Source of the DNA: Asterias rubens
Lineage: Eukaryota
DNA length: 64,000 nucleotides
Assembly: GCF_902459465.1 (NCBI RefSeq)
Contig: NC_047071.1
Location: 4,092,001 to 4,156,000 of the forward strand
Direction of reading: 5' to 3'
Shown: positions 9,638-37,415 of the stretch, in pieces
Numbering within the stretch: the stretch's first letter is position 1
How the letters are laid out: every line of letters begins with the position of its first letter
Notes under the pieces: generated by a model
The model's database searches: none
Told to the model about the DNA's origin: nothing
The model's input: only the letters and a program-made list of their open reading frames with translations
Program-made: the position numbers and the translations under genes

Positions 9638-12600
9638 ATGGCAGCTTCTTGGGTCAGGTTAGGAATTCAACAAGCCTTGAAGTGCTCGGTAAGAAGTTGT
9701 CTATTGATACTGCCTCATCAACTTTTTGGACTTTTTGTTTTTACTTTTACTAGTTAGTGACGACCACCACCAGGTGATTTCAGATTGATCATTCATGCGT
9801 TGAGTGCACATGTTGATGTTCTGTTGTTGTATTATTGTCTTAACTTTGTTTTGTTTTGCTATGCTTACGATTGTTACTGTCAGTATTTCTGTTTATAAGT
9901 CTGTGATCTACATGTAGATCACAACCGAATAATCACGGGGATTACCAATCTGGTTGTAATTGTATTTGGTTTGTTTACTTCATTAGTTTACCTTTAGCCC
10001 GTTTAGAGGTTAGTCTTGAGTCTTTTGGGTATTTAAAGTAATCCCTGGTAGCAGTTCTGTTTCACTGGAACCATGGAGGTTCTACCTCCATGCTGGGACT
10101 AAACTGGGATGGTGCATCAGGTGCCGCCACTGGTCAAATGTGCAGGTGATAGTGAACTTATGTTTAATTAATATGCAAGTGAAAAGCAAAAGAGATTTAC
10201 AATACAGGAGCGTGGAATCAGTGCTAGGTGTTAAAACACCAAGAGCTGGTAGGGCTATTTTGGGGCTATTTTCTGGAATGCTATGACAGCAGAAATAGAA
10301 TTTGATAGTCTTCCCATATAAAAGGGAACTTGGCAAACTCGCACCATGCCACAGGCCCAGGGATAAACACCAAGCTGGCAACAGCCAATCTATCTCATTG
10401 GTGTAAGGTCTATGATGATTTAATATGAATTGCACAAATCAAGAAGTTGTGATTCAGTAACTACTGCTAGTACTAGATGACAATATTTATTCCAGTCTTT
10501 TGAAATCAGCGGTTAGCTGGGGGTTTCGAATCCACAACCATGTGATAGCAAGTCCTGCAGTCTTAACCACTTGACCACAGTGACAGTGATTGTCAATTAC
10601 CATAGTGCCCTGTTTGTTTTTTTGTGGTGCCCTTTGCAAAGCCAGTAAAATTACAATTTTCCTCATATGGTCAAAGCATGCCCCTTATTTATCAGAGGAT
10701 AAAAAATTGCTATGCCCCAAAGTCCAAGGCCTGGGTAAGTTAATCAGGACTTTTCAATTGTGTTCAGAGTTTATTTGTACCAAGGTGCTTTCGTTATTAT
10801 TGTCATTGAATAACAAACTGAATTTTTGGGTTGAACAAAGAATTGACTAGAGTGGGATTCGAACCAACGACCTCCGGATTAACGTGCCGGCGCTCTACCA
10901 ACTGAGCTATCTAGCCCTATATTGGGGGTGTCCCTATTTTGTCAATATTTTTGTTCGGGGTGAATAAAAAACTAACGCAGGCAAAATATTTCTTGTTTTA
11001 TTGCAGAGGGTAACCTTGTCAAGGCCTTACTCTTCAGAAAACTTGTGGAAACTTGGACGAATAAACCACGTGGCAATAGTGGTGCCCAATCTCGGTGAGT
11101 ACTGTTTTTGTGTATGTAAATTTAGTCTGGTTCTTTGTTCTTTCCCTAGAAGATAACTTTTGAGTAGAAGTGTACATGTAGTAGGCCCTATCCAATGAGA
11201 AGTGCTCAAAGGTGGTTTACCATTTATGAGAATCAAATGGCAAAAGAAAATTCCTTGAAATGGTTTTGATCCACCCCTAAATTAATTGACTGACTATTTT
11301 GTCTGTTACAAACACACACTGTAGGACAAAGTGATGTCACAAATGAAGGAAAATTGTTTTATGACTGCTGTCCAAGCTCGGGAACATTTAAAAACAAATC
11401 TTTAAAAACAGAGGACATAGACTGACAAAAACGAGGACCTTAAGAGAACACAATACACACAAAATTTAAGTTTACTTTCCCCTTTGGCAAAGTTTGTTAC
11501 TAATCTCAACATTATTTTGTTTCGTTGTATATTTTTTAGAAGAAGCAACACATCTTTACAAGAATGTGTTCCAAGCAACAGTCAGTGAACCACAAGTGAG
11601 TATCTTAATGGGTGCGTTCGTTTAGCTTCCCTGGGTCTACCCCGCGGTGCTCACTCGGGTGAGCCCTGACAAGAGCTAAACGAACAACCACTCGCCACTC
11701 TCGTAGTGACGTTGTTTACCTGGGGCCAGCCCCCAAGTGACCCACTCCACAAGAAGGGCACTGGGAGCTGACCCGGGTGAGCCCCTGGAATGATGTCCAA
11801 GCTATTCGAACGCACCGAGGCAGACCGGGGATGACCCAGGGAAGCTAAACGAACGCACCCAATGATTGTTAATATTATTATTTATTATTATTTCTTGTAA
11901 TGAAACCCAAGGATGCCTTAAAGGGTGTATGTACTTTTTGTAGGAGAAAAAAACACAATGTCCACAGATTTACACTAAACTTACACAGTTTGAAGATAAT
12001 GATAGTAGAAAGCTTCCCTGAAAATATTACGTACCGAGGTGCTGTAGTTTTTGGGTAATGAGTAAAACAATGTCATGAAAATAGTTTTCTTACCCAGTCA
12101 GTTTCCCTTGTGGTTTATATTGATATCTGAAACAAAAAGTCGCATCCCCTTAAGGTGATCCCCTGGCTGCCGCTTCCCAGGTTGTATCGTAATTTGGGTG
12201 TGATCCCTGGCTACACGGCAGTAAACGGTTGTATGGCTTCTGACTGGCACCCCCGAACAAAGATAATGACAAAATTGGGACACCGCCAACATAGGGCTAG
12301 ATAGCTCAGTTGGTAGAGCGCCGGCACGTTAATCCGGAGGTCGTTGGTTCGAATCCCACTCTAGTCAATTCTTTGTTCAACCCCGAAAATAGTTTTCGTC
12401 TCATGAGACGAAAATTATTTCAAGCATTTACAAACGTATTTTCATGACATTGTTTTACTCATTTCTCAAAAACTACAGCACCTGCAGGTAAGTAATATTT
12501 GAAGAGAACCTTTCCACTATCATTATCTTCAAATCCTGTAACTTTAATGTAAATCTATGGACATTTTGAAAAAGTACCCACATCCTTTAAAGGGTCTGTT

Positions 12601-21600: not shown

Positions 21601-23595
21601 CACTGTATACGTCATATTTCGCCGGGCAAAAAGACGGGTAGTCATGGTAAGAATGAATACACTGCCAAAACACAAAGGTTTTGCCCGGCGGTATGCGCGC
21701 GAATCATGTTATGGTTTTTCGAGTGACGTCATCGTCTATACAGCGCTTAAAACACATCAATGTAAGGGTCAACAAATTTTTTGTTATATATATCTTGCCT
21801 GCTTAAAGCGTTTGAAACCGTTTGTTATGAAATGCATGGTTAGAAAGATATTTGAAAAGAAGAATATAATAATCCACACAAAGGTTTTCCTTCTCTGTCG
21901 CAAAGACACACGGTCGGCCATTTTGTGGAATCAAAATTTTGACTTCATAAAATGGCCGACCGTGTTAGTTCTCGACGTAAAAGGAAAATCGTGCAATTTC
22001 GAGTGATACTTGTGAAGATCATTGTATTCTACTTTTAAAATATCTTTCTAACCATATGCATTTCATAACAAACGGTTTCAAACACTTTTCAAAGACCAAC
22101 TCGACCGATCTAAGGCAACGTGTTCCTTTTAAAGAAAGAAGTTTTTAAGAGATAATGCAACCTTCTTCTGTAGAAATTTCAATTGTTTGTACATGTACAG
22201 TATAGTGTGCTTGAAGAAAACTAGTGGTATGCCTTTAATTACATGAAACGACTTTCCTAGTGAAATATGCATGGCAGCAACATTTAATGACTCTCCAAGG
22301 GTCTGACTCAAGTTGAGTCAACTTCTAATCGTAGACTCAATCAAATTAGCTCAAGTCTTTTTTTAACCTCGCGGAGACGAGGTTCAATTTGCTGGATCAT
22401 TGACCAAAGATTTGCAAGTCAACTTTAATAGTCTGGCCAACAGTGTCCAACTACATGCCTTGAATTTCATCTTTGAGGGGGCAAGGCCATTTTGATGGGG
22501 CACAGGGCGTTTCTAGCATCTGCACTTCCATTGGACACTCTGAAGGGGAAATACCAGGGCAGTTGAGGCCATGGCATTGGTTTAAATTCCGGCCTGCGAC
22601 TTCTTTGTAGAAACATTTGAAAAACACAAGCTCTTGTGTATGGGGTCGGACTCTTTCATTGCAATCCCTATTAATGCCATGTGCATATATATAGCATTTC
22701 GGCTTCACTTCATCAGTCTTTCAGGATTAATAAATGATATCAGTTGAAGGTCATGTTTGAAGATTTCTATTTGTGGAATCGGTAGTGCATGAAGCTGATG
22801 CATATTGCAAGTGTCCCATGGCTATCATAGGTCGCAACCTGTACTGATGAAACCTGTTCCTGCTGTTAATTTTTGAAAGAATAAAATGACATCAAAGGGT
22901 AGATGTTGGATAAAATATGAGATATTTTTGGAGCAATAATCTAAAGGCTGTTAGTGAATGGATGAAATACAGTGCAATTATGAGGAGAAAATTTGCAATT
23001 TTGCCTGTTTGTATTTTAGTTTTATGACAGTGAAATTTGATTTTGGGGTTTGAACAAAGAATTGACTAGAGTGGGATTCGAAACATAGACCTCCGGATTA
23101 ACGTGCCGGCATTAATCCGGAAGTCGTTGGTTCGAGTCCCACTCTAGCCAATTCTTTGTTCAAACCCAAAAGTCATTTCGAAATTTACCCAGTCAGTTTC
23201 CCTTGTGGTTTATATTGATAAAGTGAAATTTGATTAACTTAAAATTGCATGGTCCAAAGGAAACATTAATGACTTTCACAACTGAACAAAATATTTTGAT
23301 TTTTGAGTTTTGAAGAACAGGAACTACAGAGGGGATCATAAGGAATTCCTAATGACCTACAATTCTCCAATCAAATGACAAGGATCTACTTGAATGTAGC
23401 TTGACTTCAAAACCAATCAAATGTGTTTGTTTTATCTCGCAGGTAGATAATATACAAGAGGCGGTGAAAACTTTACTGGACAAAGGTGTGAAAGTGTTGA
23501 ACCCTGTACCAAAAATTGGCGCTCACGGGAAACCGGTTGTGTTTTTGAATCCTAAGGACTGCAGTGGTGTCCTTGTTGAGCTAGAGGAGGCCTAG
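9638..23595 (+). CDS. MCEE: Methylmalonyl-CoA epimerase, mitochondrial, 164 aa
   Basis: Exons 9638-9688, 11007-11094, 11540-11595, 12839-12985 and 23443-23595 (495 nt, GT-AG, in frame). Translation: MAASWVRLGIQQALKCSRVTLSRPYSSENLWKLGRINHVAIVVPNLEEATHLYKNVFQATVSEPQALPEHGVTAVFVELPNSKLELLQPLGDDNPIQGFLKKRPGGGIHHICLEVDNIQEAVKTLLDKGVKVLNPVPKIGAHGKPVVFLNPKDCSGVLVELEEA. It has VOC-fold metal-ligand motifs (NHVAI, ELL, HHICLE, VELE) and an Arg-rich transit peptide. Exon 1 is the least certain. Confidence 0.95.
10516..10584 (-). mobile_element. tRNA-derived SINE head (degenerate)
   Basis: Reverse complement GTCACTGTGGTCAAGTGGTTAAG...GTGGATTCGAAACCC, with A-box-like and B-box-like motifs. Confidence 0.45.
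10820..10960 (-). mobile_element. tRNA-like-bearing retroposon, copy A
   Basis: Contains the tRNA-like 73-mer plus flanks shared with copy B. 13-bp TSD TGAATAACAAACT (10807-10819) / TGAATAAAAAACT (10961-10973). Confidence 0.75.
10844..10916 (-). tRNA. tRNA-Asn(GTT)-like sequence, probably a repeat-borne pseudo-tRNA
   Basis: Identical to 12295-12367; cloverleaf with A and B boxes. Confidence 0.5.
11610..11860. mobile_element. MITE with 28-bp TIRs and AAT TSD (PIF/Harbinger-like)
   Basis: AAT|GGGTGCGTTCGTTTAGCTTCCCTGGGTC ... GACCCAGGGAAGCTAAACGAACGCACCC|AAT, starting 14 nt after the MCEE exon-3 donor. Confidence 0.85.
12090..12384 (+). mobile_element. tRNA-like-bearing retroposon, copy B (295 nt)
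   Basis: Flanked by a perfect 13-bp TSD GAAAATAGTTTTC (12077-12089 and 12385-12397). The tRNA-like part is near the 3' end. Confidence 0.8.
12295..12367 (+). tRNA. tRNA-Asn(GTT)-like sequence, probably a repeat-borne pseudo-tRNA
   Basis: GGCTAGA/TCTAGTC acceptor stem, GCTC/GAGC D stem, CCGGC-ACGTTAA-TCCGG anticodon arm (C31-T39 mismatch, C33 instead of U33), GTTGG-TTCGAAT-CCCAC T arm (one mismatch). Confidence 0.5.
16140..16400 (+). mobile_element. SINE 3' body with (TTA)n tail
   Basis: AAGAACCTAGTACACTTATTGCCAAGAAAAGGGGTT continues the motif that ends the SINE at 19136-19328. Ends GAGCGCTT...ATATAAGAACTGCATATTATTATTTATTATT. Confidence 0.5.
16930..17280. repeat. Degenerate ~85-107 bp tandem repeat, ~3.5 copies
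   Basis: Recurrent TCATTCAA(G/A)ACCACAGTGGATGA...AGTTGGAGGGTT(G/A)ACTGTGTACT at ~16931, 17016, 17123 and 17225. Confidence 0.6.
17545..18040 (+). mobile_element. 5'-truncated L2/CR1-clade LINE 3' end (frameshifted ORF2 C-terminus)
   Basis: LPIAQISKLQHIQNSAARLVTR..HITLVLRSLHWLLVSKRIEFKLLLLTYKSLH..APHYL / RTKSYGHRSFSYSSPSLWNNLPHNIR..KHLLKTYLF*, then GCGCTATACAAGTG and a (TTA)n tail. Confidence 0.88.
18296..18456. mobile_element. Kolobok MITE family 1, truncated
   Basis: Right third of the consensus, ending GTGTCCAGTGCCTTTA. Confidence 0.65.
19136..19328 (+). mobile_element. tRNA-derived SINE
   Basis: A box TGGCCGAGCGG (19146-19156), B box GGTTCGAATCC (19205-19215), followed by GTGTCC..AGCAAGACACTTAACC..GGGACGTAAAGCCGTTGGTCCC, which resembles conserved SINE central domains. 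Confidence 0.75.
21800..22130. mobile_element. Kolobok-type fold-back MITE, family 3
   Basis: Inverted arms TTTGAAACCGTTTGTTATGAAATGCATGGTTAGAAAGATA / TATCTTTCTAACCATATGCATTTCATAACAAACGGTTTCAAA; ends AAGGCAACGTGTTCCT-TTTAA. The same right end occurs at ~5860-5935. Confidence 0.6.
23043..23221. mobile_element. tRNA-like-bearing retroposon, copy C (5' inversion, permuted)
   Basis: Perfect 14-bp TSD AGTGAAATTTGATT (23029-23042 and 23222-23235). Contains two inverted tRNA 3' halves followed by the segment that begins copy B. Confidence 0.8.
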
Positions 23596-32317: not shown

Positions 32318-35300
32318 TTAACCACATTACATCACATCGAAGTGAAATTCTCATAAAGGTTGTTCTTACTATCGAAAGTTGCATTTCATGACTATTTACT
32401 ATAACTTTCAAAAATAGGAAATCGTGTTAAAAAAAGGCTGAAACACATGTGCTGCCCGGTAGGCCTACTCGTATTTGCTCCACGTCCATCAGCAATTTGT
32501 GAACAATTCTCCATGTTGAAAGTTTTTGTATGTTTTTGGTTTTTGAAACGGAATCATCTGTCAACATTCGTTCAGAGAAAACATTTCAATAATATACAGT
32601 GTATTCAGCTGGATCTTTCACATATTACTTTACTTTAATTTCATATATTACTTTACTGTATATTTTTATGTAATTTGCCACAGAAACCAGCATTACGCTG
32701 ACACAAAACCAAGCGATGGCTGGCTACCTCGTGGTGATAATACAGTATATCCACATTCACGCTTACATTAGAATATCAAGGCTCATTTCACGTCTCGCAG
32801 CGAGATTTCAAAGTTGTCGATGGCAGTTGTTGTTGATGGCGAGTTGAATCTCGTTGTTTTTGACGTCCGTAACGGAAGTTTCAACGATGTAGACGGCAAA
32901 GTACATTTATCTTTGGTAACCTAGCTTTATGATGCAATATGGCTACTCATACAGCTAGATAACCAAAGAGAATTGCATCACCAAGATGGTCGACACGTGG
33001 TACGATGGGGCGTGTCTACTGATGCACTCCCGGTGAAAGCAAGGTGTCTGGAGACGGTTGCACTCTGTTGTTAGTTGTTCCTCTGCTGATGACGGTTGTT
33101 CCTTAAACTTTAAAAACTGTCACTTTACTGTTTCGCAAAGAGCCATCTTTATATCATCATTTATTTAAAATACCCCTATCTATATCTTTTTAGAAAATAG
33201 AAGTATCATCTGTTGCAAAGTACTAACCAACTACAAGGACCTATGGTAATGCACCAAATAGTTAATCTATAGCAGTCTTCCTCGAAGGCTTCATAGTATT
33301 TGGACTATCAAAGTATTTTATTGAATAGCAGCTGAAAACGGAAATACACTCGGTAAACTCTACAAAGTTTAAATTATGTTCGACATTCTGTAGATCTCCC
33401 ATGCGGTATTGATGAATTTGCTATAACCTTTAAGGCCGTCATGCAAGCAGAGCACACATACCACGTCATGACCCAAGAACATCTGTATAATAACTGCGTC
33501 CAAATGGATGCCACAGTTCAATCTGACTGGACAACACTTCACATAATAATGTTCTCTAGATACAGTGAAATGGTATTTGCTGTTAACCTATAGTGAGAAG
33601 ACTCTTCTTTTTTTCATGAGAAAAATGTTTACGTTTTAAATCATGTTTGGTTTTGAATCTTTACGCGCCATTTTGTTTGCCAACTTCAACCCTGAAACTT
33701 ATGCCATGCGTGGTACGTGTCTTGACATTATTATAACTGAATAAACACAAAGTGTTGATAGTGTTTACTGATATTTTATCCTGCCAAAATGGATATTCCT
33801 CATTGTTTAAAAAAAAAAATTTGTTCAAACATCCAGTTTCCCCATCCACAAAAATTGTGAGAATTCCACTGAACTAGGCAGCATGCGTTCCAGTGAAACA
33901 ATCGAAAAACCGTAAGGGATTTTTGTCCAAGTCCCATGTATACTGTCATTCAATTTCAGCACAGCAGTCGAAATAACCAGCAGTGAACAGGGGGCATTTG
34001 AATTTTATTTTCTTCATCTATTTAGACAGTGACATTTCACAAGAGAATTGACACTGGTATAAATGTAGTAATCAGTAAGCGTCCCTACAATTAAAATAGA
34101 AAATCTACCAGATTTGTTTTAATGTTTTGGTGATTAACAATCCTACATGATCATCTTTAACCGACTATCCCAGCAATATGCATGAACATCTCTGTTAATT
34201 CACGCGGTAAAATTAACTGAAGTAATAATGGGTGCACGGACGCCTGCGTTTGGGTCCACACTACAGGGCAGAGGGCCATAGGGACGTTTGTGGTTTTTCC
34301 ATCCGGAAATCAGGCGAACCAAAAAACCCTGCAAAGAATCTGTATTGATGTGCTTGGTAAGACCACGGAGGAAGACAATTAACCACAGTTAGTTAACTTC
34401 TTGTTGAGGTATACCACAATCACACCTTGACGTCACAATGTTGTGTCGGCCATTTTGTAAATAGGTAGTACTGACTTCACACACTTTTCAACGGGAAGAC
34501 TGCAGAGAAGCTAATAAACCAATAGGTTTTTTGCAAGCTGCAAAAATACAATCGTGAAGTTCAACTTGACTCCATTATCATGATCTTTTCTAAAAGACCG
34601 AGTGGTGAGTCGTTGCTGACAAAGTCTGATACTAGGATCCAGTGTTAGGAGGTATACTTTGAAAATACAGCACTCTCTGTGCATCTTTTGGCTACTTACT
34701 GTAGATACACACATGGTGCTACCGAAAATCAATAGTATTGACACCTCACCATGCAATGCCTCAACTCATAGTTACTACTGTAGTTATAGATTTCAATGGA
34801 CAGTGTTCTCAGTGTTAGAGAAGTAGATCCAAAAGAAATGTATGTATGTCTGACGATAATTTAAGAATAAGATTTTTTTAATGTTCACACTGCAGACAAA
34901 AAAGGGTCAAACTTCATAGACAATGATTCAGATAAAAGTCTCATTTCTTCACCCCTGATACTAAAGACATTGTATCGATTCGTAAACGTCAACACTCGTT
35001 CCAGCAACAAACCAAGATGGTTTGTTTCCATGGACTCTGTCCCAATACGACCCAGACCCAAAGGAATCAACCAATTGAGTCCAATTTACGGTCTTTCCTG
35101 TCCGAGGAGGTCATGTTTCGGCTAAGCGGCCATTGTACGTGTGGACAAGTCAGAGTTGAAAGGCTGGCTCTCTTAAAGGGTTTTGATACCCTTTGTAGAT
35201 CAAGTTACTTGCAATGGCATGAATTCATCTTAAATGTGAATGAAGATGTTTGTAGATAGATGTACAGCAATACAAATTACCAGCTTCATTAGTCGTCAAG

Positions 35301-36485: not shown

Positions 36486-37279
36486 TTAACGACAATGTTG
36501 TTCGTTATTGGACACTAAGTAGAAACAGGGAGTCAAATATAGCGAGAAAACATTTCTGATGCTAGACTAGAAGTTGAATTTGTTTTTCGTAAAAATCCGT
36601 TAATTTCAACAGCGGAGATTGCCGGAATTTCAACAGCGGAGATTGCCGCAAAATTCACAAATCAAAATCTTTCTAGATGATATCCTAATTTTGATCACAG
36701 CAAATCAAAATAAATTCATGCATTGTATATGGATACATTGATATCCCCGTTTAATTTGGGTTTAACTAAAAAAGGGACAACTTCGTTCAAAGACGTAAGC
36801 TTATGCAAATATGTAATTTCATTAAATTCTCAAAGAAAAAGTTTACATTCTTGAAAACGTGAACTTGAAATGAGTCTACCAATTCTGCATAAATAATGCT
36901 TGCTACACGAAAAACCCTTCATGATGCTAACAAGAATCAGGGTTATATTTATAGACACTGGTATGCCATGCCAAATCACGTGCTGGGCGATGAATGCCAT
37001 AAACATTTCACAGTAAGTAGTGTTTCAGTTCGAGAAGTTGACCTCAGTAAAATAGAGGTCAAATTAAAATGGTTTCCGGTCAATTCATAAACTGCCCGGG
37101 GAATAGATAAAGGGTTCTGTGTACAACCAAAAGTAGCAAACTATAATTTCAGATGTTTAGCATATAGGCCTATATATATCTAAATGACAGCTTCCTCTTT
37201 GAGTTTTGGTGAACAATAGCCAAAATAAATTGGCAGAATACAGACATTATTTCAGGAGAATCACTTTCCTAGTATATAG

Positions 37280-37334
37280 CCTTCGAGAAAGACTCTGCTA
37301 GGGTCGAAACGTCAGGCCATTAACTATTTTTTGC
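37280..37334 (+). ncRNA. Penelope-type hammerhead-like motif inserted alone
   Basis: Stem I GCCT/AGGC, core TCGAGAAA, stem II GACTCT/AGGGTC, GAAAC-GTC. 16-bp TSD CTTTCCT(A/T)GTATATAG. Confidence 0.65.
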
Positions 37335-37415
37335 CTTTCCTTGTATATAGTGACACGGCCTAGTTTGCGTACAAGTCCGCGAGTGGAAACGAGTTGTAGT
37401 TTCTGGTTGACTTAA

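Follow-up and report, generated by a model that had tools for sequence, protein, structure and literature searches.

What kind of element is a 295-nt insert that carries a tRNA-like cloverleaf close to its 3' end, and by which machinery could it have been moved? The insert was found in a 64,000-nucleotide stretch of the Asterias rubens genome (contig NC_047071.1, positions 4,092,001 to 4,156,000), hereafter called the window. An earlier note, made from the letters of the window, had taken it for a non-autonomous retroelement without fixed ends, copied from a tandem or circular RNA and possibly mobilised by a Penelope-like element (PLE), in which the tRNA-like fold would act as a Pol III promoter or as an RNase P/Z processing signal. 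Considering both the genomic copies and their junctions, we propose a reading which we hold to be probable: a non-autonomous, tRNA-bearing tandem retroposon with a 312-nt unit and without ribozyme, which would be copied in the PLE manner from one monomer type.

Copies in the window and the genomic family

The window contains three copies of the unit (Table 1). Consistent with the earlier note, copy 1 is a 295-nt insert that splits a palindromic MITE-like element and is enclosed, at 12077-12397, by a perfect 13-bp duplication. Its 73-nt tRNA-like module, recovered by both ARAGORN and Rfam, has 205 nt of the insert on its 5' side and 17 nt on its 3' side, and poly-A is absent, as had been described. 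The two further copies reported with duplications of 13-14 bp were also found; the two sides of copy 2 differ at one position and the pair of copy 3 measures 14 bp. Copy 3 (23043-23221) combines an inverted 3' fragment with a direct fragment which starts in the tRNA-like part and bears the "tail".

Table 1. Unit copies, target-site duplications and tRNA-like modules in the window (T1 and T2 are the two 3' end zones described in the next section)
Feature	Positions	Strand	Remarks
Copy 1, one near-complete unit (unit positions 1-295, or to 301 with microhomology)	12090..12384	+	3' end in T1
Left target-site duplication of copy 1, GAAAATAGTTTTC	12077..12089	.	
Right target-site duplication of copy 1, GAAAATAGTTTTC	12385..12397	.	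perfect 13-bp match to left
tRNA-like 73-mer of copy 1, tRNA-Asn(GTT)	12295..12367	+	ARAGORN; Rfam tRNA 56.4 bits (gathering score 29)
Copy 2, 5'-truncated unit (unit positions 161-306)	10820..10960	-	3' end in T1
Left duplication of copy 2, TGAATAACAAACT	10807..10819	.	
Right duplication of copy 2, TGAATAAAAAACT	10961..10973	.	12/13 identical to left
tRNA-like module of copy 2, tRNA-Asn(GTT)	10844..10916	-	ARAGORN; Rfam tRNA 56.4 bits (gathering score 29)
Copy 3, inverted arm (unit positions 231-303)	23043..23110	-	outer end in T1
Copy 3, direct arm (unit position 231 over the unit boundary to 34-36)	23105..23221	+	outer end T2
Left duplication of copy 3, AGTGAAATTTGATT, 14 bp	23029..23042	.	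partner 23222-23235

A second copy of the same MITE family, at L044:627-1060 (G000:C22:6197400-6199100), is also split by the unit, which is in the opposite orientation there; its target, AAATAGTTTTCG, is that of copy 1, and the use of this target at both places suggests a preferred, near-palindromic site. Elsewhere in the window, Rfam matches a mir-9/mir-79 precursor (32901-32978, minus strand, 72.3 bits).

The insert of copy 1 was used as query in a search of the same assembly (417.6 Mb), which gave 3,603 first-look candidate sites for the 312-nt unit. The 40 sites that were scored show 96-100% identity over the full query, a period of 312 nt and arrays of 1-11 units, and copy 1 is 98% identical to the genomic arrays. 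The family is very young, with several thousand candidate sites. A sister subfamily, about 90% identical to the unit of the window and with a period of ~318 nt, gave 4,957 first-look candidates.

All unit coordinates refer to one natural unit (L008:1501-1812). It starts with TTACCCAGTCAG, holds the tRNA-like module at positions 206-278 and continues through CAACCCC(C)AAAATCATTTCAAAAT to position 312; this AC-rich tail, 3' of the module, is followed by ~36 nt of the next unit. The module is bracketed by an inverted repeat of 15-16 bp, GAACAAAGATATTGAC / GTCAATTCTTTGTTC, at unit positions 165-180 and 275-290 (L008:1665-1680 and 1775-1790). This repeat overlaps the 3' acceptor strand of the module and is also present in the sister subfamily, with a 3-nt insertion.

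We mapped 39 genomic sites together with their flanks, which makes 42 insertions with the three window copies. The flanks are unrelated among all mapped sites, and a search for a target motif at the insertion sites found nothing beyond AT-richness. Exact direct repeats of 9-16 bp (median 13) occur at 29 of the 39 sites, against 2% of shifted controls that reach at least 9 bp, so that the duplications seen in the window generalise to the family. One duplication pair encloses from 0.5 to 10.7 tandem units. Indeed, the 3,344-nt array of L034, with its 10.7 units, is contained within a single 13-bp duplication, from which we conclude that multimers are inserted in one event. The non-autonomous retroelement copied from multimeric 312-nt templates, as postulated in the earlier note, is supported. 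Adjoining one unit insertion, a different tRNA-like sequence (Ser-AGA by ARAGORN, L031:1135-1207) has the look of an ordinary tRNA-SINE head.

Insertion ends and Penelope-type anatomy

The idea that the copies have no fixed ends does not hold. The 5' ends, at the 39 mapped sites as in the window copies, are scattered along the unit, whereas the 3' ends of 56 out of 58 arms fall within two zones of ~10 nt, T1 and T2, spaced by ~45 nt. Where anchored by a duplication, the last templated base lies at unit positions 295-304 for T1 (26 arms; one more arm ends at 312) and at positions 28-38 of the following unit for T2 (17 arms). Microhomology with the target at these 3' junctions averages 1.7 nt (T1) and 1.5 nt (T2), compared with 0.35 by chance, and all three window copies fit the zones (Table 1). 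An independent, genome-wide check on T1 and T2 comes from the RNA reads of four runs, in which the unit sequence gives way to heterogeneous flanks at unit positions 300/303 and 29/36. Two apparent clusters of 5' ends, one at 269-281 close to the tRNA 3' border and one at 196-211 close to a putative Pol III start, were dropped because they are confounded by short arms and by site sampling.

In 16 of the 42 insertions (39 loci and 3 window copies, about 40%), two clear arms run in opposite directions, their 3' ends outward, and the inverted arm of these two-armed copies is 5'-truncated. In 15 of the 16, one outer end is in T1 and the other in T2; the same zone was never used twice. Under independent choice of the zones, the probability of this pairing is about 3e-5.

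PLE insertions are strongly 5'-truncated and form partial tandems; an inverted 5'-truncated copy adjoins their 5' end, and a tail of 30-40 bp is often present at one end only (Craig et al. 2021, PMC8557442). In vitro, a PLE enzyme was found to cut both DNA strands and to extend both, with a preference for AT-rich targets. Reverse transcription began at two neighbouring internal sites within an AC-rich region, the tail being the stretch between them; hammerhead cleavage is dispensable for this enzyme (Frangieh et al. 2024, PMC11167929). The insertions of the unit match this published signature: they are 5'-truncated, form partial tandems head to tail, include inverted arms that are 5'-truncated as well and show a one-sided tail with two initiation sites, and the strict T1/T2 pairing is a quantitative form of the rule that the tail stands at one end only. 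Mobilisation by a Penelope-like element, as suggested in the earlier note, is thus what this anatomy points to. The likeness to PLEs and their non-autonomous derivatives (PMC8557442, PMC11167929) extends to the AT-rich targets; unlike PLEs, the unit has no ORF, a tail of ~45 nt instead of 30-40 and a tRNA-like module.

We also considered two other origins. An ordinary tRNA-derived SINE, moved by a LINE of the RTE, CR1 or L2 type and later expanded into arrays by unequal crossing-over, would fit the duplication lengths, which are within the LINE range, as well as the tRNA-like module with its intact A and B boxes; as in SINE2 elements, a tRNA-derived part with these boxes is found in a non-autonomous element flanked by target-site duplications. 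We nevertheless regard this origin as very improbable. The tRNA part does not form a 5' head: it lies inside the unit, with 205 nt before it, and the copies, with their scattered 5' ends, begin elsewhere than at the tRNA 5' end, which agrees with the previous view that this is not a classical tRNA-headed SINE. Moreover, whole arrays lie inside single duplications, multimers often have inverted arms, and such arms, the paired T1/T2 ends and a tail on one side are foreign to LINE insertions; an A-rich, poly-A or microsatellite tail is absent, and no LINE-like terminal tail is apparent. The other origin, a tRNA-gene satellite that had spread as DNA through re-integration of extrachromosomal circles or through segmental duplication, would agree with a tandem repeat that holds a Pol III gene and with the circular permutation of the copies, but it has hardly any probability in our view, given the uniform duplications (9-16 bp), the polar truncation with variable 5' ends versus two fixed 3' zones, the microhomology at 3' junctions and the unrelated flanks at every site.

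For the preferred, PLE-type reading, we suggest that insertion would proceed by target-primed reverse transcription carried out by a Penelope-like RT/GIY-YIG enzyme. This enzyme would make a staggered cut of ~13 bp in AT-rich DNA, cDNA synthesis would begin at the internal zone T1 or T2, and both cut strands would often be extended. Multimers would arise from a single monomer type, via rolling-circle copying or repeated template jumping. The T1-plus-T2 pairing is a constraint for any model of two-site initiation and both-strand priming, and this very young family with several thousand candidate sites provides hundreds of clean junctions for the study of the PLE enzyme mechanism. In the literature that we searched, no PLE-mobilised tRNA-bearing element is described, and the same is true of a PLE-type, ribozyme-free, tRNA-bearing tandem retroposon.

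Templates, the tRNA-like module and the retrozyme alternative

The units of one insertion are more alike than those of different insertions: divergence is 0.39% within an arm, 0.30% between the opposite arms of the same insertion and 1.40% between insertions. Private variants are fixed throughout single insertions, such as 53A in 11/11 units of L034 and 143C in 9/9 units, on both arms, of L052; 63C in L043 and 229T in L053 are fixed likewise. Since these variants occur in every unit, each insertion appears to derive from one monomer type common to both arms, and a step leading from monomer to multimer is consequently needed. This step may consist of rolling-circle copying of a circle or of repeated template jumps on identical RNAs, and the data fit either route. 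RNA-seq reads that join a unit end to a unit start, as would also come from the abundant unit-length circular RNA of animal retrozymes, are common, but the libraries are unstranded and genomic tandem arrays would yield such reads equally.

The tRNA-like module of copy 1 has intact A and B boxes (TAGCTCAGTTGG and GGTTCGAATCC, respectively). It departs from a functional tRNA-Asn, for which a canonical cloverleaf, U33 and a conserved anticodon are expected: C33 replaces U33, mismatches are found at 31-39 and in the T stem, and the anticodon is GCT in some copies of the sister subfamily (L095). By its sequence features, the module is best described as a decayed tRNA gene with an apparently intact Pol III promoter. 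It is also the best-conserved stretch between the subfamilies, with 3 differences in 73 nt versus 10% overall. As the family scatters many such tRNA-like Pol III genes genome-wide, tRNA annotation will miscall them as tRNA-Asn.

The promoter role proposed for the fold is weakened by the sister subfamily, which has a T5 run (TTTTT) 3 nt 3' of the module. This terminator would stop Pol III before T1/T2, so that a simple model in which Pol III makes the template fails for a subfamily that is equally successful. An argument drawn from the subfamily of the window, namely that its plus strand has no T4 run, was dropped, because 23% of shuffled sequences are the same and the sister has T5. In the RNA-seq data, ~0.04% of the reads are on the unit, equally in both orientations (the libraries being unstranded), and 72-78% of the unit reads run on into flanking DNA. 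The alternative role, as an RNase P/Z processing signal, found no support: reads from the four runs show no pile-up of ends at the tRNA borders and no discrete RNA ends. Furthermore, most insertions hold the module whole, which indicates that the copied RNA is not cut there. The module may serve as a promoter or a chromatin element, it may offer proteins a platform directly 5' of the initiation zones, or it may be carried along as a passenger.

Ribozymes were searched for in several ways. Rfam scans of the insert and of its dimer, at the gathering threshold and with E up to 10, returned a tRNA only and no ribozyme, and the CUGANGA core of the hammerhead is absent from both strands in both subfamilies. 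The type I hammerhead that defines retrozymes, one per unit, was thus not found. Animal non-LTR retrozymes (Cervera and de la Pena 2020, PMC7229834; Li et al. 2026 preprint, 10.64898/2026.07.22.740005) nevertheless have much in common with the unit, that is to say dispersed short tandem arrays, a non-coding unit of ~170-400 nt, in which range the 312-nt unit falls, duplications of >4 bp, a proposed dependence on PLEs and a multimeric or rolling-circle template. The differences are the lack of a hammerhead on either strand, with a tRNA-like Pol III gene instead, and the lack of similarity to a PLE pseudo-LTR.

A strict retrozyme without ribozyme could be conceived, in which RNase P/Z or tRNA-splicing enzymes would cut the unit RNA at the tRNA-like fold and circularise it, and rolling-circle reverse transcription would copy the circle. 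Near-identical units with common private variants within an insertion are what its monomer template predicts, the module occupies the place, directly 5' of the initiation zones, at which PLEs and retrozymes bear their hammerhead, and reads from unit end to unit start are common. We consider it unlikely all the same. Genomic tandem arrays would give the end-to-start joints just as well, and neither the read ends, which do not pile up at the tRNA borders while 72-78% of the reads enter flanking DNA, nor the whole modules of most insertions point to a template cut at this place. The unit fold is no more stable than that of shuffled sequences on either strand (z -0.3 and -0.6). Besides, RNase P/Z leaves a 5'-phosphate and a 3'-OH on its products, and RtcB does not ligate such ends. 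We are similarly doubtful that, in a retrozyme-like element, the tRNA-like fold took the place of the hammerhead as the module which defines the unit or recruits the enzyme, and that it would be read by host tRNA enzymes or by the telomerase-related PLE reverse transcriptase when templates of unit length, possibly circular, are made or used.

If the PLE-type reading is right, self-cleavage would not be needed in vivo for multimeric retroposition of this type, in agreement with the in vitro result (PMC11167929). Animal retrozymes have been defined, and sought, by their hammerhead. Since the family has the same PLE-style anatomy without a ribozyme, elements of this kind are missed by ribozyme-based screens.

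Candidate driver elements

The genome harbours a canonical PLE with a 921-aa ORF, of which >100 copies, mostly 93-99% identical, were found; this young and abundant element is represented at L090:3740-8190 (G000:C2). Its 3' UTR contains a long poly-T tract, and internal tandem repeats of 135-190 bp lie upstream of the ORF. The element forms partial tandems and inverted arms, and inserts in TA-rich DNA or (TA)n. Its duplications, 10-16 bp, are in the same length range as those of the unit.

An association with this PLE was observed for the sister subfamily. At least 11 of the 39 scored loci lie within ~1 kb of 921-aa PLE sequence (chance ~0.2%), a proximity established partly from coordinates alone, with two loci read in sequence. 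At these two loci, the sister unit and the PLE meet across (TA)n spacers, and most of the sister loci near the PLE adjoin its 3' end with (TA)n in between; at L094:5345/5347, the 3' end of the PLE directly abuts the unit. The subfamily of the window was found near the 921-aa PLE at only 1 of 40 sites. The clustering of the sister subfamily could also reflect a common taste for (TA)n and not common machinery.

Comparison of the unit with the 921-aa PLE gave no similarity longer than 12 nt, and the unit has no sequence in common with the pseudo-LTR of this resident element; as far as this element is concerned, the result goes against the possibility raised earlier, that the unit might prove to be the pseudo-LTR of a known Penelope family. 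The 3' sequences of the two are different, and the PLE itself has a single 3' end zone and no tail (~25 copies). Taking these points together, we put the chances that this young resident PLE, our candidate, is the driver of the family at about even.

A 55-nt fragment (...GGGTCGAAACGTCAGGCCATTAACTATTTTTTG) at 37276-37330 of the window is flanked by duplications of 17 bp with one mismatch (37259-37275 and 37331-37347). In layout, the fragment is like the 3' end of the 921-aa PLE, but its sequence differs, and it probably represents the 3' tip of a second family of PLEs. Such a family would be a further potential driver, which counts against the link with the 921-aa PLE.

Two other observations concern the surroundings of this PLE. 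At L092:1-2720 (G000:C13:11055000-11060500), the array of 10.7 units, which is on C13, ends ~200 bp before a copy of the 921-aa PLE that is 5'-truncated; array and PLE copy each have their own duplication. Finally, a CUGAAGA...GAAA motif near the 3' end of the 921-aa PLE is hammerhead-like by eye; the Rfam scan of that region gave no match.
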